A stretch of 64,000 nucleotides of DNA from Haliotis rubra (taxonomy: Eukaryota), in the NCBI RefSeq assembly GCF_003918875.1, contig NW_025765392.1:1116001-1180000 (forward strand), written 5' to 3'. Below the pieces are notes generated by a model that was not told where the DNA came from, did not search any database, and worked only from the letters and a program-made list of their open reading frames with translations. Shown here piece by piece: positions 11,417 through 56,569 of this stretch. Within the stretch, counting starts at the first letter, position 1, and the number at the start of each line of letters is the position of its first letter. The position numbers and the translations under genes are program-made.

Positions 11417-14400
11417 AAGAGAAAGATAACAAGAAGAGGAAAGATAGTGGTGTTGCCATCAGGCGAAGCAAGCGAAACTCCAACAGTAAAAATGGAAAGA
11501 AAAAGAAAAAGAAGTCGGAGAAGAAGAAGGAAGAAAAGTCCAAGAAGAAGAAAAATTCCAAAGATGAGGGCAAGAGCAACGTTGTCGTGGCTGCTGCTGA
11601 CGGATCCTTGAACATCAGCAAGAGTGTAGAACCACTCCACGAATCTGTTGAAGCTGCCACAGATGAAGCTAAAGTATTAGCGTTGTCGGAGGAGAATGGT
11701 ACCCAGGTTCTGACATCAGACAATGCCGTTGAGGAAGATTTGGTAGCGGCTGTGACAGCTGTAATGGATTCCAACGTGTCTGAAGGTAAGATGGAAGCTG
11801 AACCATCAGCAGAAGAAATTGTAGCACCGACGACGGCTACAGAAGTGGCATCAGCTCCTTCTACTGAAAAGGTGTCGGTCACGGAAGAGGGACGAGAACG
11901 AGCTCTCAAAACCATTGTTGAAAGTTCTGCACAGGAAGAGATAATTCAGTCCGTCGAGGCGACAGTGCAAGAAGCTGCACCTAGCACAGAAACATCTGAC
12001 GGAGTCGCACCTTCATCTTCAGTAGCCGAGGTTGACCAACAGCCTGTTAGTCCTGTCGTATCAAACGCTGGTGACAATGGTGTCTTGAAGCGTGTGTCAC
12101 TGGGACCAAGACTAAAAACAGCAATTTTGAAGAAATATAGCGGTGCTGGAGATGCACCACCGGAGACCAGAGTTACTTTGACTAAACCCAAAATTGTGGA
12201 AGTAACTGATCTAGTGCCTCCTCCCAGGAAAAACAGACCTCGACGCACACTGTCGCAGACGGCGAGCACTACTTCTAGCAGTGATCTTAACACTAGTAGC
12301 AGTCTAAGTCCGTCTTCACCTCAGACGGATGATGACACAACAGTTGTTCCGGAAAAATCGGATGTGGGATCAGTTGTTGCACAAACACTCCAGGCAAGCA
12401 GTGATCTAAAAACTAACGTCAGTAGCGACGTAGATCCTTCAGCATCCACCATGGACAAGGGCAAGGACACTGAAGTTTCCTCATCAGAAAGGTTGGATGT
12501 GGGATCAGTTGTTGCACAGACACTTCTGTCCAGCTGTGATCTGAATACGAACGCCAGTAGCGACGTAGATCCTTCAGCATCCACCATGGACAAGGGCAAG
12601 GACACTGAAGTTTCCTCATCAGAAAGGTTGGATGTGGGATCAGTTGTTGCACAGACACTTCTGTCCAGCTGTGATCTGAATACGAACGCCAGTAGCGATG
12701 TAGATCCTTCAGCATCCACCATAGACAAGGGCAAGGACACTGAAGTTTCCTCATCAGAAAGGTTGGATGTGGAATCAGTTGTTGCACAAACACTCCTCTC
12801 CAGCTATGATCTGAATACGAACGCCAGTAGCGACGTAGATCCTTCAGCATCCACCATGGACAAGGACAAGGACACTGAAGTTTCCTCATCAGAAAGGTTG
12901 GATGTGGAATCAGTTGTTGCACAAACACTCCTCTCCAGCTGTGATCTGAATACGAACGCCAGTAGCGACGTAGATCCGTCAGCATCCACCATAGACAAGG
13001 ACAAGGACACCACCGTTACCTCGTTAGAACAGTTGGATGGAGAATCAATTGTTGCACAAACGGTCGAGGCCAGTGATCTGAACACTAACGTCAGTAGCGA
13101 CATAGATTCATCAGCAACTGCTACAGACAAGGATACAGCTAACACCGTTGAGAAGTCTGGCATTGAACCAACTGTTGAACAGGAACTCCAGTCCAGCAGT
13201 GAATGCAGTAGCCACGTTGATCCTCCTTCACTTAGGGCAGATGAGGATATACAAGGTATTTCCCAAGGAAAGACAGAATCAGGCTTGACCTCAACGGTCG
13301 TCAATATCGTCGAATCCCAAATTACTTCAGCCCCTGACATTGAGGTAACAGGTGGCGATGGGAGTACAGTTAATGTTGCTCTTGGGTCGGTTCTCAATGC
13401 AGATACTCAGTGTGTGATAACCGAAACTGTGTTAGCTCCTCTTGAAGCATCAGTTACTCTTGTAGAGAACGAGGATGAATCTCCTGTTAAAGCCATTCCG
13501 CTCTCTGATGCAGAATATAGAGATGGAGCTGGTTCAGAAGTCGTACCTAGCACGACACTTGCTGACCAGACTGAGACAGCTGTCGATGATATGGGGACAA
13601 ACACAGCTTCACTCTGCTTTGAGCCAACTCCAAAAGAAGAGCCTTCAGTAGATACAAGTGTAACAGAGCAAGTAACATCTCGAGAGCGCGCAGAGGTTGT
13701 GGAAGAAAGTGTGGCGTCCCAGTCGGAAGGTATGGTTGAAAGTGTACAACCAGATGCTCTTAAAGAAGAGTGTATTTTAAATGATATTGAGATTTACGTC
13801 GAACCTACGAAAACATTTGAGACTGAACCCGAAAAGCCAGATACAAACACTGAACCAGTTATCGTGATAGAGAGGATTCACACTGAACCTTATTACGGAC
13901 CTCTTCCTGGCAGTGAGGATGGTCAAAATGATGACACTGGGAGTGACGGTGTGGCGGACGTCACTGATGCAACCAAACAGAAATTCTCCCGCGAGACTGG
14001 AGAGGTTTGCAAAGAATGTGTTTGTGAGGATGAAGTTCCAATGAATGCAGATGAAGAAATTGCTGAAGTTACGGAAGTAGACGAAGTCGCTATAGTTGTC
14101 GAGAAAGTCATGAAAGTATCATCAGAGACTGAATCAGCCCTAAGTGATCATCAGTGCGTTAGTGCGACTGCTGAAACGCCCACTGAAGAGAGGCAAGAGG
14201 AAAGTTCGACAAATAAGGACAGTACTGGTCTGCACGCGGAAGACCATGACGAAAGCTCCAGCACAACAACCGACAGTACGATTGTTGACGAGGATGAACA
14301 CGACAGGACTATTGTTGAAGAAAAGAACGTAGCTAAAGAACCTGAAAACGAACACGCTTCAAATGAACGCAAACCTGCAATATGCAATGGTGACTCTAAT

Positions 14401-14680
14401 GGACTCACTCATGAGAGTGGCAGTGATTCTAGCTCCAGTGTGACAACTGAAACCTCCCGAGGTCAGGAGGAATGTACAGACACTGCTGTCGCCCATGAAG
14501 GCGACAGGAAAGTTGTGGTAGACTGTAACGATGAGCATATTGAGACATTGGTTGGCAAAGTTAATAGTGAGCACGATTCTTCAAGCCAGAGCGACAGAGA
14601 TCTGAGTGACAATAATAACAGTAAAATCATCATCTCGTCAGAACAAGAGAATATCATTGAGACCATCCAGAAAGTATCGG
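11417..14680 (+). CDS. Large coding exon 4 (1088 codons): Lys-rich start, then acidic Ser/Thr/Glu/Asp-rich, probably disordered region with a 45-aa repeat
   Basis: Acceptor tttccattcAG at 11415-11416, donor G|GTAAGT at 14681; 3264 nt, phase 1-1. Contains the 1035-aa ORF of the track, whose GTG start is not a real start. Confidence 0.88.
12361..13135 (+). repeat. Coding tandem repeat, 135 bp / 45 aa, 5 units plus a degenerate sixth
   Basis: Units start at 12361, 12496, 12631, 12766, 12901 and 13036 (DVGSVVAQTLLSSCDLNTNASSDVDPSASTMDKGKDTEVSSSERL). Confidence 0.95.
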
Positions 14681-15414
14681 GTAAGTGGCTGTAGTTTTGT
14701 CTTGAGTTTTATTATGATTTGTGTATTTCTCTTAAGGTAGATACAAATAATCGCGTGTTTTAACCGGGAATTAAATATTGATTCTGATGCAGTTAATAGC
14801 TGTTGCAGTAAAGGTAAAGGAGTGACGCTTTTGTAAGATCATGATTATTTAAGGTCTTGACTATGCAAGGTTATGATTGTAAAGCTGTCACATCATTCCT
14901 TTACAGTGACTTGTCTCATCTATGTCATCTTAGGCTATTGTCAAACTCCCCAGGGATTATACATTTAGGGATCCTTTCTATAGTATGCATCGCCATGACT
15001 TCAGGTAAAACTGACAGTCTACCAAACCACGAATACCGCTGGCCGAACCCCTTTTGCCATTGTACTAACAATTATACGACATGGATTCAACTTGTCAGCT
15101 TCATCATTGTGTGACGACTAGCTTTCACAAGCTGGTTTGGGGAATCAGTGTTGAGGGTAACAGGTGACTGTTTTTAGTTAGTAAAAATCTTTAAGCCCAT
15201 CGTGGAACACCCTAGGGTACGGATGCTTAAGATGCACAAGCTTTGAAATTAATAAAACGTAGGTGACATAAACTCTTTAGGATCATACACATGACTAGCC
15301 TTGGGTTTCTCTCATTTTTGTATACGTCCACTACAATCTACATTCCCTTTATTCTTTTCATCAGTATGTCGAGTCCAGAAAGTCGACATTTATATTTATG
15401 TAATGTTTGTGATA

Positions 15415-24196: not shown

Positions 24197-25863
24197 TACT
24201 AAGCAGCAAAAGAAACGTCAGTTTGGAATTTTCCTTCCCAGAAACGGATACCTGTAAACTAACTCATTTAATGTTTTGATTGAATATTTTTGACAACATC
24301 TCCAACTTTACCTGAGCAAAGACATTCCTTCTCAGACTCAGAATGGAACCCAGGAAATGGTATCAAAAACACAACCTGATCTCGGAGATGGTACGGTGTT
24401 CTCCATGTTTTTCATGCAACTCATGCTGCACGAGCTGTTCACAAGGACCAGCCCTATAAAATGCACCCCCAAACCTGGTTGAAACATTCACATTACAACG
24501 TCAGCAGGATGCCGCGACTCATGACAGCTCAGAGGATCCAGGGGGCGGTGGGGGTAGCCTAGTGGTTAAAGCGTTGGCTCGTCACGCCGAAGACCCGGGT
24601 TCGACTCCCCACATGGGTACAATATGTGAAGCCCATTTCTGGTGTCCCCTGCCTTGATGTTGCTGGAATATTGCTAAAAGCGGCGTAAAACCAAACTCAG
24701 TCAGTCAGTCAGTCAGAGGAACCAGGCTCTAGGAAGACATGAAGCTGGCCACACTGCACAAGCCGTTGCCAATCACTTCCAGGTCAACGTTCGGACCATC
24801 TACAGGCTGCAGCAACGTTTCCGGGCCACCAACACCACAAATGATCGAGCCCGTACTGGCAGACCAAGGGTGATCAGAAGACGACAAGACCGCCATGTTG
24901 TGCGACAGCATGTACAGAATCCCTTCATGCAGGCATCCGAAACAGCACGCAGACAGTGGGAACACACGGAACCAATCAGTACTGATACAGTACGCCGACG
25001 TCTCAACAGCGGGAAACTCCATTGCCATAGACCTTACTGTGGACCTATCCTCATCCCTCGTCATCGGTGTGAACGTCTACAGTTTGCCCTACCAAAACAC
25101 CAAAACTGGCGATACAGGCAATGGAAAACTGTTCTGTCCACAGATGAGAGTCGGTACTGCGTATCAACTGCAGATGGCAGAACAAGAATATGGCGACGAC
25201 GTGGCCAGCGTTACTCAGACCAATGTGTTATGGAAAGAGACTCATGGGGAGGTGCAAGCATCATGGTATGGGGTGGAATAGGCCTGAACCAGAGAGTGGG
25301 TCCTGTGGTGTTCCAGAACCTTGGTCCAGGGAGAGGAGACGGCATTTCGCATGTCACCGGAACAACATTTTCCAGCATGATAACACCCGGGCCCATACTG
25401 CCAGGGCTACACGGGACTTCCTACAGCGGAACGGTGTCAACATTATGCAGTGGCCAGCTCTTAGTCCTGATGTAAACCCAATTGAACACCTTTGGGATGA
25501 AATTCAGAGGAGACTGAATAATGTCATACCAAGGCCGAACACAGCCGATTTATTGCGCCAGGCCTTTCTCAGAGTGTGGTTCAAGGTGCCAATAGCCTTC
25601 ATCAATCGATTGGTGCACTCCATGCAAAGACGCTGTGCTGCAGTTATTGCCGCTCGTGGTGGTCACACTAGACACTGAAGTCAAGGGTCTGAATGGACTG
25701 CAAACGTTCACGTAATGTCTTTGAATCGAGTTATTTATTGATATGTCAAGATATTGAACACAAAAACTGTTTTTGATCCGGTTATTATGTCCATTTCTGT
25801 AATGATTTGATTACTGTGCCCATCTAATTTTGAATTCGTACTGACGTTTTACTGCTGATTATA
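24197..25863 (+). mobile_element. Tc1/mariner DD34E transposon, defective (transposase 24509-25678)
   Basis: MPRL..GRPR N-terminus, STDESR, VWGGI, QHDN-x-SPDVNPIEHLW with 34 residues between D and E, GHTRH*; degenerate TIRs. Broken by a SINE and by a frameshift/deletion near 25345. Confidence 0.92.
24541..24712 (+). mobile_element. SINE family A, inserted in a Tc1 transposase ORF
   Basis: TSD tcagagga(t/a)cca; (CAGT)n tail. Confidence 0.95.
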
Positions 25864-26100: not shown

Positions 26101-28620
26101 CACAGTCCTGTGATATTTCACCTCAAACTGGATATTGGTTTAGGATATATTTTTGAATTACACATCACCATTCCGCATACAGAGTGACTGAGTTATTGTA
26201 AAACCCTGAATAGTTTGAAGGGAAAATCGTAGTTCCTAAGATGAACATACACAGGGCAAATTAAAGTGAGACATTTTGTGATTTCGTGTGAAACGTTACA
26301 TTTGGGTCATTTTGGCTACTTTGAGGCTTAGTAATATAAGCTGACTAATTGACTTCCATCTGAGGTTGTCTACTCCTCCGACACGTGCAGATCTACACGC
26401 AAGCAGCATCACCAACACCGACAGCGTCATCTTCCTACGCCAACGTTGACGTCCCTGAGCGGCACCTCTTGAAAAACATACTGCATTCCACGTTTGATAG
26501 TTGAGACTGTGTAGAGAGAGACCAGTTTAGCAGTTGTGTTTGAACAGTCCGGGTGAATGATTCCTAAAAATAAATATACTCAACAATTCAAAGGGTATTG
26601 AGCTTTGATAAAACATTAACACAATGTGGCTCTTATTTGTCCTGTACTCACGGATATCAAGGTATTTCTACGCTAATGGAACTTCATCATTCACGCATAA
26701 TGCATTTACTCACGAAATCGAATTCGTGTACACATCGATATTGATTGTTATATTGGATCATAGCCTCTGTCATTGATTATTGATATATCATACATTCACT
26801 TGTAACGTAAGGAATGCGGTTTGTTATATCGGCCATCGATAATGCTTTCAACCGGTTACGTGAAACATACTGTTTATAAATTGTGTTCGCCACTGCAGTA
26901 CGAACATCCCGAAAGAGTTTAAAATCGACTAACATTTTTCTCCCCATAAACAAATGAATAACGGTTTATAGATCTTGTTCGTTTATGCAACTCTTACGGT
27001 GGCATTGTGTATGCTCTGTTTGGGCATTTCAAGCTTTGGGCACTATAGATTACAGATTATTTCAGTGTCATGGGTATTGGCAATTCATTCTGATCGTTGA
27101 AAGTGGTACAGGAAACTTATTATTGTATATAACACCGTACATAATATATGCCACGTGGTCTCCGTTATAGAGTGAATATTGTGTAACGCCGCGGACTGTT
27201 CAGTTCTTGCTGTATGACGTAAGTCTGCAGATAACTGACGACATGCATGGCAGATGACACCGAGAGGGTACTTTATTGCACTCGGTGTTCTGAATATCTT
27301 TATGAGATAATTCTGGTTATTTGAAACAGGTAAGTTGTGTAACCAAACAAGGTTATTCAAATATAGTGACTTAATAATGCCGAACTGTCTGTGGCCACCT
27401 CGTACTACATTCAAAAATGTCAACCAAACAAAACATTAGGTTTGTGGATAATCAAAATTCAATTTCTGTGTCCTGGGGATTAGTATTATATATCAATTGA
27501 ATATTTTTAATCGTTTATTTTCATCTATAAAGTAGTCGTGACAGAGTTATCTCCCTTCTGTTTTGTTTACATCCGGCATTGTCTGCTAGATCTGTCATCA
27601 TGGCTCACACTGTTTCCCCGTCCTGTGTGTATTAAATAAATCAAGGATTTTTTTGTAATTTTTGTATTTTTGGGTAATGTTTTGTACAATGTTTTGTTAT
27701 CTCTATATTTACAATGTAAACAGCTGTCGTCAATAACCGGATTTTACGACAATCACATGACCACCATCGCATGTAAAACCCGCTTTTGATAGTAAAGATC
27801 TACTGTCCCGGAGTCTACAGCTGATCCTGCAGTATTCAGAGTAATTGTCTTGACACACCTTTACAGGTACCCACTATACAACTCCGTTAATTAGGATAAC
27901 ACATTTGAATTGCATTTGTGGGAATGGTTCTTATATAAAACGTATTGCATATATTATAATTTGGCAACAAACAACCCGGAATAATGCCTCGCTTGTCATA
28001 TATTCGTTTCTTATGCTGTTGCTTCAAATATATAACTGTTACCATGATACGAGTATTAGAAGCTACCATATCCACTCAACACAATTGAAGTTGATGGAAG
28101 GAGGTTTCTGGAAGACATCTAGAGCAGGATGCATTGTTTGAGTTGCACATGTTATTGTTTACTGTTTCCCTTTGAAACATTACGGAAACGAATGTCAACT
28201 GTTACTGATAATATGTGCAATTTAGCAAATCCTCTGTTTTGAGCTATCACCTGGTGTTATCAGTGATTATAGTTATTGCTTCATAAACTATTTTACATCT
28301 ATTTTGCCCTTTACACCAAATATAATCTGTTTTCTGAGGACAGTCAAAACTGGATTTCCTTTGCACTGATGTCTGTATATTTGTGTGAGTCGCTTTCGCA
28401 AGGTGAGCCTTCCTGATCAACTATGTGATCTTGAAAATAATATGTAACTGTGATAGTGGATGAGACGTCTTTGAAGAAGTCTTGATCCCCCTGAGAGACT
28501 GATGCAATGAGTTTCGGCCTGCATGTAGCAGTCCGTGGAGGGAGTATAGACTTATTACCGCCATAATTCTGATTGATTTCCCCGTAACATATACATGGTG
28601 GCATGTCAGCATGAATCAAG

Positions 28621-33089: not shown

Positions 33090-33425
33090 CTGGTTGGCCC
33101 GTGGGGGACTGTTACAACGTCGGATGGCTGTGTCGCTGTACAGACAATGATGACGTTTCCGGGGGCCCATGTGCAAGACGTCCACGCGCCAAAACGCCAA
33201 GAAAGATGAACACGAGTGGCCCAGGTTCAAGGCTGCAGTAACCACAACTCAGACTCTCACAGGACCTTGTCGTATCCACCGCAACACAGTCAGGGATCGC
33301 TAACGTCATTGCGAGATACGATTACGTCGTACCGACAAATGACCTATCTTGACGCAACGTATCGGGGAAATTGTCAAAGGTTGTGCCTAAATCATGTCCG
33401 TCAAGCTCGGTTGTGGTGGATGTTG
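33090..33425 (+). mobile_element. Degenerate Tc1 relic co-duplicated with the receptor unit (paralogs near 37770-38330, 48630-48900, 53170-53940)
   Basis: GRPRAGRP-type and RHYGLRPRRP relics in the 53125-53475 ORFs; nucleotide homology among the copies. Confidence 0.7.
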
Positions 33426-33516
33426 CTTCAAAATACCCTTGAATGTTAATTCAGTACAACAGTTACAGATAGTTTGAGACTTTATCATACTGGCAGAAAG
33501 TCATGAGAAGATTCCT

Positions 33517-34746
33517 TTATTGTGTTATATGGACGAGGAATCCCACAGACACAACCATCCAAAGAACCGTGAATATAACCATACACAGAGAGTCAGCAGT
33601 TACACAGTACCCAACAGAAATACTCCGACCTTCCAGAACCTTTCCAGTTGGATTCCCACTGCCGGCCGAACCATTGGTTTTGGAATCCAGATGAACCTGG
33701 TCCATGACCCTGCGTCTACTTCCTGGAAATGGTACGGAGCAAAAACGCGGTATCATGAACAATGCCGATTGTGGATTTTTCTTGTTGACCTTCGCAGGAT
33801 CTTTCATGACGATGAAGATGGTGGTGACCACGGACAGAACGCTGATTCCAAGGAGACACGTTAGATACAGGGTGACCATTGGGATGTTGTCGGACGATTT
33901 GGGAAGTAGTTCACTCACGATGCTCATGAATACAGTCAGAGCGAGAAGGCACGTGATGGCATACGAAACCTTCTCGCCACAGTCACACGGAAGTGAGAAG
34001 ACGAATATGTTGAGAAATGAAAGCACCACCACAGGAAGTATTACATTGAGGACAAAGAACATCGGACGCCTTTCAAGATCAATCGCAACGTAAAGGAATG
34101 AGAACCTTGATTCTACAACAAATCTTTCAGTAGTGTATGCTCTGGAAGCTGAAAGAATCCATTCTCCATTTTCTGTGTACTCTTGGGTGTTTGCAGTAAT
34201 CAGTGATGAAACCATTTGCAGCCCGTTTGAATCATAGCTGACGGGTAGAAATCGGAACTGGCATGTCTGAACATCAAATGGAAATAACGTCAGATCTAAC
34301 TTGCAGTCAGTAACAAAGTTTGCCCCAGGTAACCAAGTTACTCTGCCGTCGCTGTAAACTGTAATGGAGGATGTCTCGTCTTTGAAGACATCCCGATCCT
34401 CAACAGACACTGGTACGATGAGTTTCGGTCTCCATATGTCAGTCAGTGGAGGATGTATAGACTTTATGCCGCTATAATCCTCAGGATTCCAGGTGAGAAA
34501 CTCGTCCCGCCATGTTAGATTCATCCACATGTTGCTGTGGAGGATCTGTCTGACCTGGTCTACTTCAGTTATGGCCACCAAGTTGAATCTGCTGTGAACG
34601 TCAACATGTTGACTCTGGTTGTATACTGGTCTGATTTTAGTGCTGTAGTTTCCAAACATGTCGCTATACAGTCTCTTCATCCCCTCAATACTGCCTGCTG
34701 CAGATCTACACAGGGCCAACAGCACCAGCACATACAGGAGCTTCAT
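33517..34746 (-). CDS. nAChR-like Cys-loop ligand-gated ion channel subunit with intronless CDS, copy A (409 aa, non-alpha type)
   Basis: Signal peptide MKLLYVLVLLALCRSAAG, WxD, IWRP, Cys-loop CKLDLTLFPFDVQTC, ENGEW, four TM segments, M1-M2 linker PCDCGEK. ATG at 34746; the track's longer start is a GTG. Confidence 0.95.
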   Translation of the reverse strand: MKLLYVLVLLALCRSAAGSIEGMKRLYSDMFGNYSTKIRPVYNQSQHVDVHSRFNLVAITEVDQVRQILHSNMWMNLTWRDEFLTWNPEDYSGIKSIHPPLTDIWRPKLIVPVSVEDRDVFKDETSSITVYSDGRVTWLPGANFVTDCKLDLTLFPFDVQTCQFRFLPVSYDSNGLQMVSSLITANTQEYTENGEWILSASRAYTTERFVVESRFSFLYVAIDLERRPMFFVLNVILPVVVLSFLNIFVFSLPCDCGEKVSYAITCLLALTVFMSIVSELLPKSSDNIPMVTLYLTCLLGISVLSVVTTIFIVMKDPAKVNKKNPQSALFMIPRFCSVPFPGSRRRVMDQVHLDSKTNGSAGSGNPTGKVLEGRSISVGYCVTADSLCMVIFTVLWMVVSVGFLVHITQ

Positions 34747-34769
34747 CTTCCTGTGTCCCCTTTGAATGT

Positions 34770-34802
34770 AATGAGGCACTGATCCTCACAGTTTTATTAA
34801 AT
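34770..34802 (-). promoter_or_regulatory. Candidate core promoter (TATA-like plus Inr-like) of receptor copy A
   Basis: ATTTAATAAAA about 29 nt upstream of TCATT, 26 nt before the ATG; a similar arrangement is present upstream of the paralogs. Confidence 0.4.
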
Positions 34803-36517
34803 CCTATCTACATTTCAAGTTTGTTAGCTTGCTGGCGTTAGAAAACCACCAGACACGTGAGAATAATTTGTTCAGTCTTGGTGGGTGATTGAACAAACAA
34901 GACAGATAGCCAAACAAATCAATGGCCATTAAACGCTTCGGCTTTTGTCATTCAGCAAGCTATGTTGATAATTAGACGGATATTCCAGCACTAATGGAAC
35001 CTAAGCATCCCTGCACAATGCTTTTTCTCACGACATTGAATTAATGACATTGTTTACACATCGATACTGACGGATATAAAGGCTAGCATTATCCTTACAG
35101 GGATTACCAATACTTGATACGTTCCGAATTTGTAACACTGTGTATGAAATATGTTATAGGGTACAACGTTATGGTTTCGTCAGTTGTCCTCGTGAACAAC
35201 ATCATTTATCAACTGATGTTGCTGTCGTACAAACATCTCAAGTAAGTTGCTAACCAACAAACGTTTCATCTCAAGATTATGTCAATAAATCTTTATATTG
35301 TATATAGATAGTTGATATCCATCGGAGTACAGAAATGGCTGTCCAATTCAGGTCAAGTAAAGTTCTTACTGTTGACCCCAGTTATGGAGCGAATGTTTGT
35401 CTATGTGATGCATAGGTAAGTCTATCTGAATCACTGCAACACAGAGCCAGCAAATCGTACCGTCGGGCACAAGGACTTCATCATACAGATAATACATTGT
35501 ATCCATGCAATCCTCTCATAACCTTTGTATATTCTGAGGATTGCATGGATACAATGACATTGTATTATGCACCCCCAAACTATACTGGTAACTACGAAAA
35601 TTCCACGGCAAAATTGATAATGATGTTACACACATATTTCATTGTGCTTAATTGTGCGCCATAGCAACGTGTATTTTCGTTGAGCTGTCACATTGATTTA
35701 CTGATACTGCAGATCGACGGAAGAAGGTATCTTTATCCAACACTACAGGAGGTTGAGTTTGCCCTCAAGAAGGTTGTCATATAGTTTCAAACCATGAATG
35801 ACTACGTAACCATTTTGTAACGGTAAGCAAAGCATATCACCATAGGCAGTCAAACGTCCTGTGGACGTGATTGACAAACCATGGACAAACCATCACCTTC
35901 CAATACATACACGTGTTTCTCTATTTTGGCATCTCGTATTGTGTTTAAAAAAATGGATGTATTAGTTGTTTACACAGATACGGTGAGAACACGCCCTTTT
36001 TGACACAATTTATATCCACGTTGCATTATTGTCTTAACGTAAAGAGATTTATGATAAGAAACTGTATACTGCCCACAAGAGGAAAATGTGAAAACAGGGA
36101 ATCACTATCAATATAAATATATACTAACGGGAAAGGTAACAGTGCATAAAATGAAAAAGCATCAAATCTATTTGAAAAGTATAAAAATAACTCTACATAA
36201 ACATGCAGCAAGGCCCTTTGCATGAAAGTTGATTTCACGTATGGTGCGTGGCACTTGTACTTTGTGCATGATGTAATTACTCGCTTTTTGCATGCTTTTT
36301 GACGCCTGAAGTTCACACACCTGATATTAAGAAATGAGGAACAGTTTATTGTTCTCTAACCTATGAATGTTGTGGAAAACTTGGTAATTTCAACCTAAAC
36401 TGGGATTCGAACCCACGCCCTCAGAGTCAGGCCCCTAATCGCCAGCACACAAAAGTACTAGAATCTGTGCTTTACTAAGAAAGTGTAATCCCAAATATAA
36501 GATAAGTTACATTTGAC

Positions 36518-37433
36518 ATTTGGATCTGAAATATGGGGTTTTCAGCGTATTGATTGTATTGAGAGAGTGCATCTTTTAGCCTGTAAAAAGTACCTCAATG
36601 TAAGCTCAAAGACACCTAACTGCATGGTATATGGCGAATGTGGCAGATTTCCTTTGTATATCAATTCTCACATAAGATGTTTAAAATATTGGTTTAAGGT
36701 TCTAAATATGCACGAACAACGTCTGCCAAAATTAGCTTACAATATGCTTTTAAATCTGGATAATTTGGGAAAACACACTTGGGTAACCGATATCAGAAAT
36801 TTATTATTTTCTCACGGTTTCGGTTTCGTATGGTTGAGCCAAACAATTGGCGATGTGAACTGGTTTATTAATGAATTTCGTGTTAGATCAATAGATATGT
36901 TCAATCAAGAATGGAAATCCACCCTAGATTCAAGCTCACGATATGAATATTACAGGACCTTTAAAAAGTTACTCCAGCCAGAAAAATACTTATCAATAAT
37001 TACAACATATAGTTTAAGAACAATGTTCGTAAAGTATCGTTTAGGTTTGTTATCTTTAATGATTAATGAGGGTAGAAAAACCTCTGTCCAGAAAGAACGT
37101 CGATATTGTCCTTTATGTAACGTTGGAATAGAAAATGAATTCATTTTACCCTGATATGTCCTTGTTTTCACGAATTAAGACAGAAATATATACCGCACCA
37201 TCTTCTTGCAAAGCAGCCCCATTATGCATATGTATCTTTGTTACAAACCAATAATGAAAATATTCTTGCTCAATTGTCCTCATATATAAAATATGCATTA
37301 GCTAAAAGAGATCTTCTTATAAAGCGAATTGTATACCCTTAAATATATATGTAAATATCCAGAATATTCCTTTATCACTGTAACTCTCATGTATATGGGC
37401 CGGAGGCCTTTCATACAATAAACATCTTTTGAC
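36518..37433 (+). mobile_element. 5'-truncated non-LTR retrotransposon (RTE-X-like ORF2 C-terminus plus 3' UTR)
   Basis: GSEIWG..IERVH..VYGECGRFPL..CPLC motifs, AATAAA, flanking tttgac; the empty site is seen in the paralogous unit near 48330. Confidence 0.85.
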
Positions 37434-38505
37434 TTTGACCACTTTCTATATGGCATAGTCTAATCACCATAAATCATGTTATTATCTCTTTGCATTAAAA
37501 ACATGGCATGGCATCAAATAATGCACAGTTAGTTTATTCCAGTGGTACGTATTGAAACTACGGGTTCACAAATACAGACTTAACCTCAGGAATTAGAAAA
37601 ATGAATCGAACATTTGCCCATGCTTCATTTGGAATGGGCAAGTGTAACACAATTATGGATCTTGATAAATTGCATGGAGCTCATGAATGTCTGAAACTGT
37701 CGTCGTTTTAAGTAGGTGGACTGATTGATGTTTGATCGTTCTGAAAGTTACACGGGTAATGAACCACATCATTCCACGACTCACGACTGGATGTCCCAAC
37801 GTCAGGTGGCTGTGTCACTGTACAGATGTTTACAAAACAATGATGACGTTGCCGAACGGCCACGTGCACGACGTCGGCTCGTCACAACGCCAAGAAAGAT
37901 GAATACGGGTGACACATCTCAGGCCAAGGTTCAAGACTGCAGTGACCACTACTCAGACTACCCCAGAACTTCCACGTATCTGCTGCAAACGAGATAAGCG
38001 CCTATAGTTGAGTCAAAATCATGACTATCAACCTTGGTTGTGGTGGGCGTTGTTTCTACAGAAGTGTCCGTTTTTAACGTTGGCTGTAATGACGCACGTG
38101 GTGTGATCTAGAGTGATCCGATTTTCGGACCACTAACAATTCCGTTTCTTCAACGTTATGGCAACATGATAATGCCCGCTAGAGTTACAATGGTGAATCG
38201 TCAACCGCAAAAAAGTTTTAGTACTGTCTTGTCGTGCAAATCAACTATCTCTCTCCACTCTATAGAGCAGGTGTGCGATGAAATGGCTCCCTCTCTACGT
38301 GCCCAATCCGCCGTTCATGATTTGGCGGCATGAGTCATAGACATGAAAGATGCTGTTCTGCCGTCTTCGAATAATCACAAGATCCACAGATTAAATATTT
38401 CATTATTACATTTTTAAATAGTGAAATAATTCTAACAATCAACAGCTTCGTTTAGTATATGATGATCCAGAATATACTTGAATGATAATTCAATACAGAT
38501 ATATT

Positions 38506-39729
38506 TTATTGTGTTGTCTTGACGAGGAATCCCACAGACACAACCATCCAAAGAACCGTGAATATAACCATACACAGAGAGTCAGCAGTTACACAGTACC
38601 CAACAGAAATACTCTGACCTTCTAGAACCTTTCCAATTCCATTTCCATTGCCAGCCGAACCATCGGTTTTACAATCCAGTTGAACCTGGTCCATGATCCT
38701 GCGTCTACTTCCTGGTAAGGAGCAAAAACGAGGAATCACAAATAATGGTGACTGTGGGATTTTCTTGTTGACCTTCGAAGGATCTTTCATGACGATGAAG
38801 ATGGTGGCGACCACGGACAGAACGCTGATACCGAGGAGACACGTTAGATACAGGGTGACCATTGGGATGTTGTCAGATGATTTAGGAAGTATTTCACTCA
38901 CGATGCTCATGAATACAGTCAGAGAGAGAAGGCACGTGATGGCATACGAAACCTTCTCGCCACAGTCACACGGAAGCAAGAAGACGAATATGTTGAGAAA
39001 TGAAAGCACAACAACAGGTATTATTACATTGAGGACAAAGAACATCGGTCGCCTTTCAAGATCAATGTCAACGTAAAGGAATGAGAATGTGGTATCTTCA
39101 AAGGTTCTTTCAGTAGTGTATGCTCTGGAAGCTGAAACACCCCATTCTCCATTTTCTGTGTACCCTTGGGTGTCTGCGCTGACGCGTGATGAAACCATCT
39201 TCAGCTTATTTGAATCATAGCTGACGGGTAGAAATCGGAACTGGCATGTCTGAACATCAAATGGAAATAAAGTCAGATCTAACTTGCAGTCAGTAACAAA
39301 GTTTGCCCCAGGTAACCAAGTTACTCTGCCGTCGCTGTTAACTGTAATGGAGGATGTCTCGTCTTTGAAGACATCCCGATCCTCAACAGACACTGGTACG
39401 TTGAGTTTCGGTCTCCATATGTCAGTCAGTGGAGGGTGTATAGACTTTATGCCGCTATAATCCTCAGGATTCCAGGTGAGAAACTCGTCCCGCCATGTTA
39501 GATTCATCCACACGTTGCTGTGGAGGATCTGTCTGACCTGGTCTACTTCAGTTATGGCCACCAAGTTGAATCTGCTGTGAACGTCAACATGTTGACTCTG
39601 GTTGTATACTGGTCTGATTTTAGTGCTGTAGTTTCCAAACAGGTCACTGCACAGTTTCTTCATCCCCTCAATACTGCCTGTTGCAGATCTACACAAAGCC
39701 AACAGCACCAACACATACAGGAGCTTCAT
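38506..39729 (-). CDS. nAChR-like Cys-loop channel subunit with intronless CDS, copy B (407 aa)
   Basis: Intact ORF, close paralog of copy A with the same motifs. Confidence 0.95.
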   Translation of the reverse strand: MKLLYVLVLLALCRSATGSIEGMKKLCSDLFGNYSTKIRPVYNQSQHVDVHSRFNLVAITEVDQVRQILHSNVWMNLTWRDEFLTWNPEDYSGIKSIHPPLTDIWRPKLNVPVSVEDRDVFKDETSSITVNSDGRVTWLPGANFVTDCKLDLTLFPFDVQTCQFRFLPVSYDSNKLKMVSSRVSADTQGYTENGEWGVSASRAYTTERTFEDTTFSFLYVDIDLERRPMFFVLNVIIPVVVLSFLNIFVFLLPCDCGEKVSYAITCLLSLTVFMSIVSEILPKSSDNIPMVTLYLTCLLGISVLSVVATIFIVMKDPSKVNKKIPQSPLFVIPRFCSLPGSRRRIMDQVQLDCKTDGSAGNGNGIGKVLEGQSISVGYCVTADSLCMVIFTVLWMVVSVGFLVKTTQ

Positions 39730-41354
39730 CTTCCTGTGTCCCCTTTGAATGTAATGAGGCACTGATCCTCACAGTTTTATTAAATCCTATCTACATTTCC
39801 AGTTTGTTAGCTTGCTGGCGTTAGAAAACCACCAGACACGTGAGAATAATTTGTTCAGTCTTGATGGGTGATTGAACAAACAAGACAGATAGCCAAACAA
39901 ATCAATGGCCATTAAACGCTTCGGCTTTTGTCATTCGGCAAGCTATGTTGATAATTAGACGGATATTCCAGCACTAATGGAACCTAAGTATCCCTGCACA
40001 ATGCTGTTTCTCACGACATTGAATTAATGGCATTGTTTACACATCGATACTGACGGATATAAAGGATAGCATCATCCTTACAGGGATTACCAATACTTGA
40101 TACGTTCCGAATTTGTAACACTGTGTATGCAATATGTTATAGGGTACAACGTTATGGTTTCGTCAGTTGTCCTCGTGAACAACATTATTTCTCAACTGAT
40201 GTTGCTGTTGTACAAACATCTCAAGTGAGTTGCTAACCAACAAACGTTTCATCTCAAGACAGAGTGAGTAATCTGTCAATTTCATTGTATTGTACATAGA
40301 TAGTTTGATATCCAACAGAGTACAGAACTGGTTGTCCAGTTCAGGTCAAGTAAAGTTCTTACTGTTGACCCCAGTTATGGAGCGAATGTTTGTCTATGTG
40401 ATGCACAGGTAAGTCTATCTGCATCACTGCAACACAGAGCCAGCACATCGTACCGTCGGGCACAAGGACTCCATCATACAGATAATACATTGTATCCATG
40501 CAATTCTCTCATACCCTTTGTATCCTCTGAGGATTGCATGGATACAATGACATTGTATTATGCACCCCAAACTATACTGGTAACTACGAAAATTCCACGG
40601 CAAAATTGATAATGATGTTACATACATATTTCATTGTGCTTAATTGTCCGCCATAGCAACGTGTATTTTCGTTGAGCTGTCACATTGATTTACTGATACT
40701 GCAGATCGACGGAAGAAGGTATTTTTATCCAACACTACAGGAGGATGGGTTTGCCCTCAAGGTGGTTGTCATATAGTTTCAAACCATGAATGACTACGAA
40801 ACCACAAGGCAGCGTCAAGGTAACCATTTTGTAATGGTAAGCACAGAATATCACCTGTGGACGTGATTGACAAACCATGGACACCACAAATGGCTCCATA
40901 ATCACATTAACAATCACAAACATTTCAGTTGGCCAATAAATAGCAAAGCACGTACACATGTCTAGGCGTGACCTATTCGATATATTCGTGTGTTCCAGAT
41001 GTTTCACAGCATGTATATTCTTAAGGGTGAACAATGGCATAATACACAATTATGTCGGTAAATGTATCACTCTGGACCCTTAAAAACTGGGATATTTTGT
41101 GGATAAACAACTGGTATTTTGTTAATAGTCTAAAACATATGTGTCTGCCTCTGTGTGTGCGTGTTTGTTTGGGCTATGTATTAACGAGCACCATCAAACA
41201 ATCAAATGGTTGAACCATTGCGATGAAAATATCTACACATGATGAATGATAAGATAAAGGTTTACGTTTCAGCCTCAAACACAACACAAAGTGTTCAGTC
41301 ACTGCAAATGTTGCTTAGATCCACTTGTGATTTTTGCTAATTGCCAAATGTTGT

Positions 41355-43214: not shown

Positions 43215-44452
43215 TTACTGTGTTATCTGGACGAGGAATCCCACAGACACAACCATCCAAAGAACCGTGAATATAACCACAGAGAGTCAGCAGTTACAAT
43301 AGCACTCACAGAAATACTTTGACCTTCTAGGAACCTTAATCCAATTCCATTTCCATTGCCAGCTTCAAACCAATGGTTTTAGAATCCAGTTGAACCTGGC
43401 CCATGATCCTGCCCACTTCCTGGAAATGGTAAGGGAGCAAAAACGAGGAATCACAAAATAATGGTGACTGTGGGATTTTCTTGTTGACCTCGCAGGATCT
43501 TTCATGACGATGAGGATGGTGGCGACCACGGACAGAACGCTGATACCGAGGAGACATATGTGATACAGGGTGACAATTGGGATGTTGTCGGATGATTTAG
43601 GAAGTAGTTCACCTAATGATGCTCATGAATACAGTCAGAGCGAGAAGGCACGTGATGGCATACGAAACCTTCTCGCCACAGTCACACGGAAGAAGAAGAC
43701 GAATATGTTGAGAAATGAAAGCACAACAACAGGTATTATTACGTGAGGACAAAGCACATCGGTCGCCTTTCAAGGTCAATGTCAACGTAAAGGATAGAGA
43801 AGAAGGTGGAATCTACGAAGGTTCTTTCAGTAGTGTATGCTCTGGAAGCTGGAAAGAATCCATTCTCCATTTTCTGTGTACTCTTGCGTGTTTGCGCTGA
43901 TGAATGATGAAACCATCTTCAGCTTATTTGAATCATGGCTCGACAGGTAGAAATCGGAACTGGCATGTCCGAACATCAAATGGAAATAAAGTCAGATCTA
44001 ATTTGCAGTCAGTAACAAAGGCTTGCCCCAGGAAACCAAATTACTATACCGTCGCTGTTAACTGTAATAGAGGATGTCTCTCGTCTTTGAAGACATCCCG
44101 ATCCTCAACAGACACTGGTACGTTGAGTTTCGGTCTCCATATGTCAGTCAGTGGAGGGTTTATAGACTTTATGCCGCTATAATCCTCAGGATTCCAGGTG
44201 AGAAACTCGTCCCGCCATGTTAGATTCATCCACACGTTGCTGTGGAGGATCTGTCTGACCTGGTCTATTTCAGTTATGGCCACCAAGTTGAATCTGCTGT
44301 GAACGTCAACATGTTGACTCTGGTTGTATACTGGTCTGATCTTAGAGCTGTAGTTTCCAAACAGGTCGCTGTACAGTCTCTTCATCGCCTCAATACTGCC
44401 TGCTGCAGATCTACATTGCGGCCAACAGCACCAGCACATACAGGAGCTTCAT
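43215..44452 (-). pseudogene. Full-length receptor copy C with many small frameshifting indels (pseudogene or poorly polished sequence)
   Basis: Collinear with the paralogs from ATG (44452) to TAA (43215); track ORFs 44044-44439 and 43336-43557 are fragments of it. Confidence 0.85.
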
Positions 44453-49122: not shown

Positions 49123-50352
49123 TTACTGTGTTATCTGGACGAAGAATCCTAAAGACACAGCCATCCAAAGAACCGTGAATATAACCATACACAGAGAGTC
49201 AGCAGTTACACAGTACCCACCAGAACTACTCCGACCTTCCAGAAGCTTTCCAGTTGGATTCCCACTGCCGGCCAAACCATTGGTTTTAGAATCCAGTTGA
49301 ACCTGGTCCATGATCCTGCGTCTACTTCCTGGAAATGGTAAGGAGCAAAACAGAGGAATCACAAATAATGGTGACTGTGGGGTTTTCTTGTTGGCCTTCG
49401 CAGGATCTTTCATGACGATGAGGATGGTGGCGACCACGGACAGAACGCTGATACCGAGGAGACACGTTAGATACAATGTGACCATTGGGATGTTGTCGGA
49501 CGATTTTGGAAGTAGCCCACTCACGATGCTCATGAATACAGTCAGAGCGAGAAGGCACGTGATGGCATACGAAACTTTCTCGCCACAGTCACACGGAAGT
49601 GAGAAGACGAATATGTTGAGAAATGAAAGCACAACAACAGGTATTATTACATTGAGGACAAAAAACATCGGTCGCCTTTCAAGATCAATGTCAACGTAAA
49701 AGAAAGAGAAGGTTGAATCTACGAAGGTTCTTTCAGTAGTGTATGCTCTGGAAGCTGAAAGAATCCATTCTCCATTTTCTGTGTACGCTTGGGTGCCTGC
49801 GCTGATGAGTGTTGAAACCATCTTCAGCTCATTTGAAAAATAGCTGACGGGTAGAAATCGGAACTGGCATGTCTGATCATCAAATGGAAATAATGTCAGA
49901 TCGAGCTTGCAGTCAGTTGCAAAGTTTGCTCCAGGTAACCAAGTTACTCTGCCTTCGCTGTTAACTGTAATGGCGGATGTCTCGTCTTTGAAGACATCCC
50001 GATCCTCAAGAGACACTGGTACGATGAGTTTCGGTCTCCATATGTCAGTCAGTGGAGGGTGTATAAACTTTATGCCATTATAGTCCTCAGGTTTCCAGGT
50101 TAGAAACTCGTCCCGCCATGTTAGATTCATCAACACGTAGCTATGTAAGATCTGTCTGACCTGGTCTACTTCAGTTATGGCCACCAAGTTAAATCGGCTG
50201 TGAACGTCAACATGTTGACTCTGGTTGTATACTGGTCTCATTTTAGTGCTGTAGTTTCCAAACATGTCGCTGTATAGCCTCTTAATCGCCTCAATACTGC
50301 CTGCTGCAGATCTACACATAGCCAACAGCACCAGCACATACAGGAGCTTCAT
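49123..50352 (-). CDS. nAChR-like Cys-loop channel subunit with intronless CDS, copy D (409 aa)
   Basis: Intact ORF with signal peptide, Cys-loop CKLDLTLFPFDDQTC, GEK and 4 TM segments. Confidence 0.95.
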   Translation of the reverse strand: MKLLYVLVLLAMCRSAAGSIEAIKRLYSDMFGNYSTKMRPVYNQSQHVDVHSRFNLVAITEVDQVRQILHSYVLMNLTWRDEFLTWKPEDYNGIKFIHPPLTDIWRPKLIVPVSLEDRDVFKDETSAITVNSEGRVTWLPGANFATDCKLDLTLFPFDDQTCQFRFLPVSYFSNELKMVSTLISAGTQAYTENGEWILSASRAYTTERTFVDSTFSFFYVDIDLERRPMFFVLNVIIPVVVLSFLNIFVFSLPCDCGEKVSYAITCLLALTVFMSIVSGLLPKSSDNIPMVTLYLTCLLGISVLSVVATILIVMKDPAKANKKTPQSPLFVIPLFCSLPFPGSRRRIMDQVQLDSKTNGLAGSGNPTGKLLEGRSSSGGYCVTADSLCMVIFTVLWMAVSLGFFVQITQ

Positions 50353-52116
50353 CTTCCTTCGTCCCCTTTGAATGCAATGAGGTGCTGATCCCCAGCTGTT
50401 TATTGAAAACTATCTACATTACGAATGAGACCAATTTGTTTGGTCCTGGTATATGATTGGACAAACAGGACAGAAAGCCAAACTGTTCAATAGCCATCGA
50501 GCTTCCACATGTCCATCAAACGCTTTCGCCTTTGTCGCTCAGTTATGTTGACATTTAAGCCAATATTCAATGGAACCGCATCGTGCACGCACAATCCTTT
50601 TTTGCACGAAATTGAATTAATGTATTCTCTTAAAACACATAATTTCTTAATTGTTGTTGCTGTTGTAAACTGTCCTAAGGGACTGGGAAACGAACAAACA
50701 GTTCAAGACAGAGGGATTGCTCTGTCAATCAACCATTGTATTGTATTTGCATAGTTAGTATCGATCACGTTATACTCCGATTGATTGAGTAGTGAACCGG
50801 CTGTCCAATTCCGGTCAAATAGCAAACTTACTGTTAGCCAGAAAGTAGGCCTCATTTATGTAGTGAATGTAGTTTTACGTGATGCACAGGCGTTTCTATC
50901 TGTATCACTGCGATTCCGTGCCTGGCAATCCTACTTCACAGCTCGAAGACTCCATCATGCAGACAATACTCTGTAGCCATGAGATCCTCTTACATCCGCG
51001 TGATACTTGTCACTTACTACCCTACACCTACATTGTAAAATGATAAGATATTACATAACATTTTGTTATATTTGATTTTGTGCCATAACAACAATACTTT
51101 CGTTGCTCTATCACATTGATTTACTGACACTGCAGATCAACAACAAGAGCTATTTTTTACCCAACTCTACAAGAGGATGAGTTGGCCCTCAAGGCAGGCG
51201 CAAGTTTCAAAACAGAATCTGGCATCACATACGGTTTGTCATCACAATAAAACACCATTGAAAACTGTACCCTAAAATAACTGGATCCTTTTTATGTATA
51301 ACAGTACATTTCAGGAAATGCCACTTTTAGAGTATACGACATGGAGCAAATGATAAACTGAAGCATTTGAAGTGTCTAATGAACTAAGTCAGTATGTTTT
51401 TCTTTTCTCTTAATATGCAGATAAGGTCTAGATGATGGGCATTTATTTCCTTTTAACTGAAGGAATCAGTTATTATTAACATTCACCTTTCACCTTTTAG
51501 AACAATACAAACATGAGATGGTCTAGTTTCCGTAACAACTGAAGAACCCTCAGCCTGGTATGGGTTGAACGATGTGTTTTTGGCTGCCAGAGGGTTTGTC
51601 ATCACCTTCCAATACATACACATGTTTCTCTAGTTTGGCATCTCGTACTATGTGCAGAAACAGGATGAATTAGTTGTTTACACAGATATGGTAAGAAGAT
51701 GTCCTTCATGACAGAATTACATCCACATCGCAGTATAGCCATAGTGCAAAGATATTTTTGAATAAAATCTTCATACTGCCCACAATAGGTAAATGTGCAA
51801 ACAGGGAATCACTATATTTAAGTATATACTCTAACGGGAAAAAGTAACAGTGCATAATATCAAATTATATAAAAGCTATTTGAAAAGTATAAAGATATCC
51901 CTAAATAAAAATGCAGCAAGGCAGTTTGCATGAAATTTGATGTCACATATCGTGGGTGGCACGTGTACTTTGTGCACAACGAACTTACTCACATCTTGCA
52001 TGCTTTTGACTCCTGAAGTTCACACACCTGATATTGCAAATTGAATTCAAATTGGTTGATAATTTTCTAGCCTCTGAATGTTGAGGAAAACTTCAACCTA
52101 TACTGCGCGTACTGTC

Positions 52117-54227: not shown

Positions 54228-55439
54228 TTATTGTGCTATCTGGATGAGGAATCCCACAGAAACAACCATCCAGAGAATTGTGAATATAACCATACACAGA
54301 GAGGCAGCAGTTTGACTTTGACCTTCTAGAACCTTTCCAGTTGGATTCCCATTGCCAGCCGAACCATCGGTTTTAGAATCCAGTTGAACCTGGTCCATGA
54401 TCCTGCGTCTACTTCCTGGAAATCGAAAGGAGCAAAAACGAGGAATTACAAACAATGGCGATTGCGGGATTTTCTTGTTGGCCTTCGCAGGATCTTTCAT
54501 GACGATGAGGATGGTGGCGACCACGGACAGAACGCTGATACCGAGGAGACACGTTAGATACAGGGTGACAATTGGGATGTTGTCGGATGATTTTGGAAGT
54601 AGGTCACTGACGACACTCATGAATACAGTCAGAGCGAGAAGGCACGTGATGGCATACGAAACTTTCTCGCCACAGTCACGCGGAAGTGAGAAGACGAATA
54701 CGTTGAGAAATGAAAGCACAACAACAGGTATTATTACATTGAGGACAAAGAACATCGGTCGCCTTTCAAGGTCAATGTCAACGTAAAGGAAAGAGTAAGT
54801 GGAATCTACGAAGGTTCTTTCAGTAATGTATGCTCTGGAAGCTGAAATACTCCGTTCTCCGTTTTCTGTGTACGCTTGGGTGTTGGCACTAACCAGCGAT
54901 GAAACCATCTTCGGCTCATTTGAATCATAGCTGACAGGTAGAAGCTGGTACTAGCATGTCTGAACATCAAATGGAAATAAAGTCAGATCTAACTTGCAGT
55001 CAGTTGCAAAGTTTGCCCCAGGAAACCAAGTTACTCTGCTGTCGCTGTAAACTGTAACAGAGGCTGTCTCGTCTTTGAAGACATCCCGATCCTCAACAGG
55101 CACTGGTACGATGAGTTTCGGTCTCCAAATGTCAGTCAGTGGAGGGTGCATAAACTTTATGCCGCTATAATCCTCAGGTTTCCAGGTGAGAAACTCGTCC
55201 CGCCATGTTATATTCATCAACACGTTGCTATGGAGAATCTGTCTGATCTGGTCTACTTCAGTTATGGCCACCAAGTTGAATCTGCTGTGAACGTCAACAT
55301 GCTGACTCTGGTTGTATACTGGTCTGATTTTAGTGTTGTAGTTTCCAAACAGGTCGCTGTACAGTCTCTTCATCGCCTCAATACTGCCTGCTGCAGATCT
55401 ACACAGGGCCAACAGCATCAGCACATGCAGGAGCTTCAA
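54228..55439 (-). pseudogene. Receptor copy E with one in-frame TAG (54951-54953) directly after the Cys-loop
   Basis: Track ORFs 54951-55439 and 54228-54908 are in the same frame; CAG(Q) is changed to TAG. Also ENGEW>ENGER, PCDC>PRDC and a short deletion before M4. Confidence 0.9.
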
Positions 55440-56319: not shown

Positions 56320-56569
56320 NNNNNNNNNNNNNNNNNNNNNNNNNNNNNNNNNNNNNNNNNNNNNNNNNNNNNNNNNNNNNNNNNNNNNNNNNNNNNNNNN
56401 NNNNNNNNNNNNNNNNNNNNNNNNNNNNNNNNNNNNNNNNNNNNNNNNNNNNNNNNNNNNNNNNNNNNNNNNNNNNNNNNNNNNNNNNNNNNNNNNNNNN
56501 NNNNNNNNNNNNNNNNNNNNNNNNNNNNNNNNNNNNNNNNNNNNNNNNNNNNNNNNNNNNNNNNNNNNN
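56320..56569. other. Assembly gap (250 N)
   Basis: Run of N. Confidence 1.

Follow-up and report, generated by a model that had tools for sequence, protein, structure and literature searches.

The stretch examined here, positions 33880 to 34530 on the minus strand of a 64,000-nucleotide window (the whole stretch of DNA that was analysed) from the blacklip abalone Haliotis rubra, lies inside an intronless gene, copy A, which is predicted to encode a nicotinic acetylcholine receptor (nAChR)-like channel subunit. Copy A stands in a tandem array whose members are under purifying selection and appear to have inherited from older gastropod ancestors an agonist site without the principal residues for acetylcholine (ACh).

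A tandem array of intronless receptor genes

From 28.4 to 55.4 kb of the window, the minus strand carries five copies and one relic of this single-exon gene. They were located by tblastn with copy A, which placed the copies at 33520–34779, 38509–39762, 43218–44415, 49126–50382 and 54231–55403 and the relic at 28446–28571. The features of the array are as follows:

Copy A, 33517–34746, minus strand: intact intronless coding sequence (CDS) of 409 residues plus stop; nAChR-like subunit
Stretch under study, 33880–34530, minus strand: residues about 73–289 of copy A, counted from the ATG at 34746
Upstream block, 34747–35887, minus strand: about 1.1 kb duplicated together with the copy A CDS; counterpart at copy B, 39730–40883
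Copy B, 38506–39729, minus strand: intact CDS, 407 residues; loop D Trp, 20' Glu (P0003)
Copy C, about 43218–44415, minus strand: pseudogene with at least eight frameshifts plus internal stops, judged from tblastn pieces in three frames
Copy D, 49123–50352, minus strand: intact CDS, 409 residues; loop D Leu, 20' Gly (P0004)
Copy E, 54231–55403, minus strand: pseudogene; ATG lost, in-frame stop just after the Cys-loop
Relic, 28446–28571, minus strand: loop A region of 42 residues, 57% identical to copy A (tblastn)

Copy A lies in an uninterrupted open reading frame (ORF; 33517–34779, minus strand) whose likely start codon is at 34746, and its product, to which database protein P0001 is identical, is laid out as a signal peptide, a ligand-binding domain, M1–M3, a short M3–M4 loop and M4. 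It matches the Pfam families Neur_chan_LBD (PF02931, E 2.5e-46) and Neur_chan_memb (PF02932, E 1.4e-19); copies A, B and D each match the ligand-binding and membrane domains. Within this product the stretch under study begins at loop D Trp74, takes in loops A, E, B, F and C, the Cys-loop, M1 and M2, and ends at the M2–M3 Pro282. The best solved sequence relatives are alpha3 and alpha7 (HMMER, E about 1e-60). An AlphaFold2 (AF2) model with a predicted local distance difference test (pLDDT) score of 78 consists of a beta-sandwich and M1–M4, and in it beta9 (196–210) passes through a two-residue turn into beta10 (213–226), which fits the shortened loop C of copy A. The M3–M4 loop, called short in a preliminary description of this DNA made from the sequence alone, comprises 69 residues and is predicted to be disordered, without a predicted MA helix. 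On its domain matches and its model, copy A is a predicted subunit of a Cys-loop pentameric ligand-gated channel of the nicotinic-type cation branch.

Two of the five window copies, C and E, are pseudogenes as judged from the lesions in their reading frames. Beyond the lost ATG and the in-frame stop, copy E carries Arg in place of the otherwise invariant loop F Trp, a Cys-to-Arg replacement, an M4 Asp-to-Ala replacement and a pre-M4 deletion. The NCBI model of copy E (P0013, 54231–55403) is spliced round the stop, and another model (P0012, L009:12725-13956) is spliced round a frameshift, so that defective copies appear as intact proteins.

The array continues beyond the window. On contig QXJH01000145.1, copy A is situated at about 1.15 Mb, and five more copies were found at 1.21–1.26 Mb, four of them intact and one frameshifted and spliced round in its public model; an overlap of the window with this second subcluster was considered and rejected, the coordinates being separate. 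Altogether H. rubra has at least 10 copies over about 115 kb, of which seven are intact. The repeat unit of about 5 kb takes in the CDS and about 1.1 kb upstream of the ATG, and the single-exon ORFs lie 5–6 kb apart. Copies A and B are 92.8% identical over 2.39 kb, with 3' similarity ending at the stop codon. The upstream block probably holds the promoter and the 5' untranslated region (5'UTR), and its A–B divergence (Jukes–Cantor, 0.063) is below the synonymous divergence of the CDS (dS 0.143), a difference that may stem from a local conversion tract or from conservation of the promoter or 5'UTR.

Other abalones carry such genes too: H. asinina and H. cracherodii have intronless copies in tandem, and one called copy was seen in H. 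rufescens. In a nucleotide tree the copies cluster by species or species group, with one clear ortholog pair shared by H. cracherodii and H. rufescens. Three near-identical 412-residue copies of H. cracherodii (L002:3986-17245) follow one another at exact intervals of about 6 kb with dS of 0.025–0.036, indicating very recent tandem amplification or homogenisation. We posit that the H. rubra array likewise grows and decays by unequal duplication of the unit of about 5 kb, CDS and upstream block together.

Agonist site, pore and the 20' ring

Residue equivalences were taken from HMMER alignments to solved alpha7 and alpha3 and from four MAFFT alignments, all of which were concordant. Each of the following alpha7 positions was matched to copy A by both methods:

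Loop A Tyr93: Pro112 in copy A
Loop B Trp149: Val169 in copy A
Loop C Tyr188: Val210 in copy A
Loop C Cys-Cys: a two-residue gap in copy A
Loop C Tyr195: Phe215 in copy A
Loop D Trp55: Trp74 in copy A, kept

The hallmarks of an alpha-type agonist site, namely the loop C Cys-Cys, the loop B Trp, the loop A Tyr and both loop C Tyr residues, are all lacking in copy A. The loop B Trp (alpha7 W149) is the cation-pi partner of ACh. The preliminary description had read loop A as having no Tyr, loop B as having Val for Trp, and loop C as being without Tyr-x-Cys-Cys and about two residues shorter than in alpha7, and the alignments agree with it on each count. At the canonical aromatic positions the sequence alignments show Pro at loop A and Val at loop B, with aromatics kept as Phe215 and Trp74.

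Across the Haliotis clade, the loop A position is Pro, or Thr in two sequences, and the loop B position is V, T, I, S or A. The two loop C Tyr positions, Val and Phe in copy A, are mostly Phe and Phe in the paralogs, and the aromatic lining thus partly survives. In copy A, too, the aligned residues indicate an aromatic box that is not wholly lost, in which the loop D Trp and one loop C Phe remain. At loop D, copies A, B and C have Trp and the other two, D and E, have Leu, as had been noted earlier; over the 17 Haliotis proteins the Trp is kept in 12 and replaced by Leu or Met in five, one of which is the dead copy E.

All the gating and pore motifs named in the preliminary description are present in copy A: the C-x13-C Cys-loop with FPFD, the pre-M1 Arg226, GEK with the -1' Glu258, 2' Ser, 6' Thr, 9' Leu, the M2–M3 Pro282 and the M4 Asp385, to which 13' Val can be added. 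The C-x13-C loop with its FPFD core was found in copies A, B and D, and the GEK filter with the -1' Glu and the 9' Leu gate is invariant in 17 of 17 Haliotis sequences; by its residues this filter is that of a predicted cation-type pore. In the Californian H. cracherodii/H. rufescens ortholog pair (P0016 and P0017; L010:10001-11212 and L003:10001-11218), Phe replaces the second Cys of the Cys-loop, so that the signature disulfide cannot form, and yet the ratio of nonsynonymous to synonymous divergence (dN/dS) of the pair is still 0.40.

Position 20', in the outer ring, is Glu in copies A and B, Gly in copy D and Asp in copy E. The residues had been given correctly in the preliminary description, but the Asp belongs to a pseudogene, copy E being dead. 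Within the near-invariant M1–M3 region this position takes only Glu or Gly, with at least six changes on the tree by a state-change count that may be inflated by poor resolution of the tree and by gene conversion; it is the most changeable of the 87 M1–M3 sites and one of the 15 most changeable among all 409. In nicotinic pores the charged rings affect conductance, and it is a fair inference, already drawn in the preliminary description for the paralogs, that a switch between Glu and Gly at 20' should alter conductance and perhaps Ca2+ flux.

Age of the loss and selection on the genes

An exhaustive HMMER search of 1.84 billion representatives yielded 13,026 relatives, and no representative outside the Haliotis cluster exceeded 50% identity, the next best reaching at most 44%. 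In a tree of 138 proteins (FastTree, Shimodaira–Hasegawa (SH)-like supports) the Haliotis clade has a support of 100 and a stem of 0.75, and is nested in a clade of 62 representatives with a support of 99. Among these 62, the loop B Trp and the Cys-Cys occur in none (three have Phe or Tyr at loop B) and the loop A Tyr in one, and loop D is often not Trp either. All 19 clade members named by organism are gastropods, belonging to Patella, Lottia, Aplysia, Elysia, Biomphalaria, Bulinus, Babylonia, Candidula and Haliotis. Since the loss is common to the 62-member clade, it represents an old trait of a large gene clade rather than an event at this locus, and the distribution of the residues on the tree indicates that the ACh determinants were lost before the abalone lineage arose. 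A dismantling specific to this locus, which the preliminary description had implied, was rejected on the same grounds: the nearest relatives all share the loss, and it is common to every named gastropod relative examined.

Selection was assessed on 17 intact Haliotis CDSs (135 pairs) by pairwise Nei–Gojobori counts. Pairwise dN/dS ranged from 0.24 to 0.50 with a median of 0.31, including species groups with dS above 0.4, and a one-ratio codon model (M0) gave an omega of 0.45. Values well below 1 indicate that the sequences are not drifting neutrally. By region, dN/dS was lowest in the M2–M3 loop (0.08), the Cys-loop (0.08), M1 (0.12) and M3 (0.17), intermediate in loop A (0.26) and M2 (0.27), and highest in the intracellular loop (0.53), loop C (0.57), M4 (about 1.0) and beta9 (1.2). 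The genes are thus kept by purifying selection, which is strongest on the pore, the Cys-loop, the M2–M3 loop and the pre-M1 region, and the gate-coupling and pore-forming parts are the best conserved.

Site models were run in an implementation of our own, which took fixed branch lengths and kappa from the M0 fit and did not model gene conversion; under M1a they placed 63% of sites at an omega of 0.13. Model M2a improved on M1a (twice the log-likelihood difference, 12.1) with 4.7% of sites at an omega of 2.1. Candidate sites lie in the intracellular loop, in loop F (183, 189), in loop C (213) and beside loop B (172); no site among the 17 Haliotis CDSs was under positive selection with P > 0.95 in M2a.

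Relation to known channels and candidate explanations

The fold of copy A is that of the solved alpha7 and alpha3 subunits (PDB 7KOO, 8UT1, 6PV7), with a Z of 29.8 and 32% identity to alpha7 (VIA-align). Copy A shares with these subunits every motif listed above as kept, from the C-x13-C loop with FPFD to the 13' Val and the M4 Asp, together with the 20' Glu. It differs from them in having Pro at the loop A Tyr, Val at the loop B Trp and at Tyr188 and a deleted Cys-Cys; it further has Ser at 16' in place of Leu, the 69-residue M3–M4 loop without a predicted MA helix, and an intronless gene in a tandem array. The structural comparison with alpha7 and octopus CRT1 that had been proposed in the preliminary description was made at the level of global scores (Z 29.8 and 22.1, respectively).

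The non-alpha subunits of vertebrate muscle (epsilon, gamma, delta and beta1) resemble copy A in having neither the loop A Tyr nor the loop B Trp nor the Cys-Cys, and their structural scores against it (Z 29.5–29.8) reach that of alpha7; they are only about 25% identical. In alignment, epsilon (P0044) replaces the loop A Tyr by Glu and the loop B Trp by Gln and is without the Cys-Cys, but retains the Trp of loop D; in beta1 (P0037), Ile stands at the loop A position and Tyr at that of the loop B Trp. Unlike the abalone genes, muscle non-alpha subunits possess an MA helix in a long intracellular loop, are encoded by single-copy, intron-rich genes and have fixed heteromeric partners.

The cephalopod chemotactile receptors octopus CRT1 (PDB 9E6B) and squid CRB1 (PDB 8EIZ) share the fold at Z 22.1 and 22.4. 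These receptors are derived from nAChRs, are encoded by intronless clustered genes, do not respond to ACh and have a hydrophobic pocket (bioRxiv 10.1101/2025.03.03.641191; PMC10338036; PMC13174522). The abalone genes are likewise intronless and clustered and have lost ACh-site residues, a likeness that does not amount to shown descent; the identity of CRT1 and CRB1 to copy A is 24–26%, below the 32% of alpha7. No cephalopod protein is among the 19 named clade members, in a tree built without chemotactile receptor sequences, and on these sequence comparisons the results lean against membership of the abalone array in the chemotactile receptor clade. Alpo4 of Alvinella pompejana (PDB 8BX5; Z 25.4, 26% identity to copy A) is a lophotrochozoan nAChR-like protein without the Cys-Cys tip that remained an orphan after wide ligand screening (PMC10338036); it differs from the abalone clade in retaining aromatics, among them W159, the Trp of loop B (PMC10338036).

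Molluscs are known to have tandem expansions of intronless nAChR genes (PMC6896357), as well as clades with substituted agonist-coordinating positions and GEK-type pores (PMC13174522). The abalone array shows the same features as the expansions in these works (Jiao et al. 2019; MolluscaGenes survey), namely tandem intronless genes, lineage-specific amplification, GEK-type pores and agonist-site substitutions (PMC6896357; PMC13174522), and as intronless tandem genes amplified by lineage it falls among such expansions. This kind of array has already been described for molluscs in general and the abalone locus adds a member; Haliotis sequences receive no mention in the two surveys (PMC6896357 and PMC13174522). 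Specific to the present work are the residue-level mapping, the selection analysis and the 20' toggle.

In our hypothesis, copy A is a working member of a tandem array of intronless genes for short nAChR-like cation-channel subunits. The array would represent a Haliotis-specific subfamily on a long stem, set within a much older clade, the named members of which are all gastropods and which had apparently already lost the principal-face determinants (loop A Tyr, loop B Trp and the loop C Cys-Cys tip). Its subunits would assemble into cation channels in which canonical ACh binding at their own principal face should be impossible, and the channels would most likely be gated by another ligand, bound in a pocket of Pro, Val and Phe with the loop D Trp. 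Differences among the paralogs would lie chiefly in loops F and C and in the intracellular loop, and two classes of outer-ring charge (20' Glu or Gly) may give differing conductance or Ca2+ flux. We regard gating of the abalone channels by a ligand other than ACh as reasonably probable. The preliminary description had put the case more strongly, as functional cation channels with a new ligand. Function is supported indirectly for the intact copies by dN/dS (median 0.31, M0 omega 0.45), by the constrained channel parts and by the invariant GEK, although copies C and E are dead. A new ligand is plausible from the loss of the ACh principal-face determinants, but this loss does not compel it, as epsilon and beta1 share the losses and signs of positive selection in the pocket are weak.

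Several observations weigh against the proposed reading. One search of sequencing runs found no RNA run containing the stretch; the three runs that match it best, mapped on 33400–39399, also cover intergenic DNA, which marks them as DNA runs, and a further run taken to be RNA touches only a repeat. All Haliotis database proteins of the clade are genome-derived gene models, three of the 10 H. rubra copies are defective, and M4 and the intracellular loop evolve nearly neutrally. The tree of relatives was made with FastTree, and its branches are long. Signs of positive selection in the pocket are weak, and gene conversion among the paralogs may have exaggerated them; as the candidate sites lie in what are the loosest parts of any such channel, we treat the M2a result as a hint only. 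Finally, epsilon and beta1 serve in ACh-gated heteromers through their complementary face, and because they share the losses there, the residue pattern alone is no proof of a new ligand.

This last point underlies the alternative that the abalone proteins are non-alpha, complementary or structural subunits of heteromers, in which they would contribute only a minus face (loop D Trp, loops E and F) or a scaffolding place, while a canonical alpha-type abalone partner supplies the principal face and the channel is gated by ACh. The same principal-face losses are seen in epsilon and beta1; the loop D Trp is kept in epsilon and in most Haliotis proteins (12 of 17), and the structural match to the muscle non-alpha chain 9awk_B (Z 29.8) is tied with alpha7 at the top. 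Within the ligand-binding domain, constraint is weakest in loop C, which would be a vestigial principal-face element (omega 0.57, with only 24% of its sites in the constrained class). The non-alpha pattern of a lost principal face with a kept loop D Trp matches epsilon, yet five of the 17 Haliotis proteins, dead copy E included, have Leu or Met at loop D, and loop D is often not Trp in the 62-member clade. Subunits obligately tied to a fixed receptor at the synapse, moreover, seldom show species-specific tandem amplification with pseudogene turnover, and loop A is strongly conserved as a Pro-containing motif instead of drifting. The loop D losses, the species-specific amplification with pseudogene turnover and the firmly conserved Pro-containing loop A appear more in keeping with a receptor family of rapid turnover than with a fixed partner at a synapse, and we consider the heteromer alternative unlikely, if still one to be taken seriously.

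A different possibility is that the array consists of silent or decaying retrogene copies whose intact frames stem from recent duplication and gene conversion. The missing RNA evidence, the three broken copies among the 10 of H. rubra and the M4 omega of about 1 would agree with this, as would the report of Jiao et al. that unexpressed genes are commoner among intron-poor mollusc nAChRs (PMC6896357). Decay is difficult to reconcile with dN/dS of 0.24–0.50, well below 1, in all 135 pairs including those with dS above 0.4, with an omega of 0.08–0.17 in the pore and coupling elements, with intact copies persisting in four species, or with the ortholog pair at 0.40 and 63% of sites at 0.13, and we judge it very improbable. 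Nor do we give much credence to gating by protons, metal ions or lipid, or to constitutively leaky channels. The zinc-activated channel (ZAC) and pH-gated bacterial homologues are divergent pentameric channels with non-classical gating; copy A shares its fold with ZAC (8wge, Z 22.6; 8yx6, Z 25.6), GLIC and sTeLIC, and its pocket is partly aliphatic with a shortened loop C. Its likeness to these channels is lower than that to nAChRs, however, no specific metal- or proton-sensing motif was identified, and nothing in the present analysis favours non-orthosteric gating over an organic ligand, which leaves this explanation quite improbable.

A wider proposal, which we advance as a doubtful one, is that the clade without the Trp and the Cys-Cys, all of whose named members are gastropods, represents a family of ionotropic chemoreceptors independent of the cephalopod chemotactile receptors, with the abalone array a recently amplified branch in which loops F and C would set the ligand range and the 20' switch would give two conductance or Ca2+ classes. 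In octopus, nicotinic receptors have been turned into environmental sensors. Should non-ACh gating be true of the abalone channels, the octopus-type finding would extend to gastropods, a much larger group, and in abalone, settlement and feeding cues carry economic weight. The seven intact paralogs, with a near-invariant pore and differences at one charged ring and in loops F and C, also offer a compact natural experiment. What the present analysis adds is the residue-level check, the age of the loss beyond abalone, the recognition that non-alpha subunits share the losses, and the 20' toggle.

Other elements occur in and around the array. The interval between copies A and B contains a very high-copy repeat at 36400–36600, with a summed contig depth above 100,000 in the DNA runs and many variable joints as far as 37434; a 213-residue ORF on the plus strand (36513–37154) overlaps it and has no Pfam match. 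A 250-N run, either an assembly gap or a mask, lies just beyond copy E at 56320–56569. On the one side of the array is a reverse-transcriptase ORF (59462–61096, minus strand, 544 residues; RVT_1, E 4.9e-30), and on the other an ORF of 201 residues (24870–25475, plus strand) with a Tc3-type transposase helix-turn-helix (HTH) domain (E 7.6e-09); on their domain matches, both are mobile-element remains flanking the array. Farther away, at 11587–14694 on the plus strand, is a 1035-residue ORF whose product would be acidic and rich in Ser, Asp and Glu, with internal repeats of about 40 residues.

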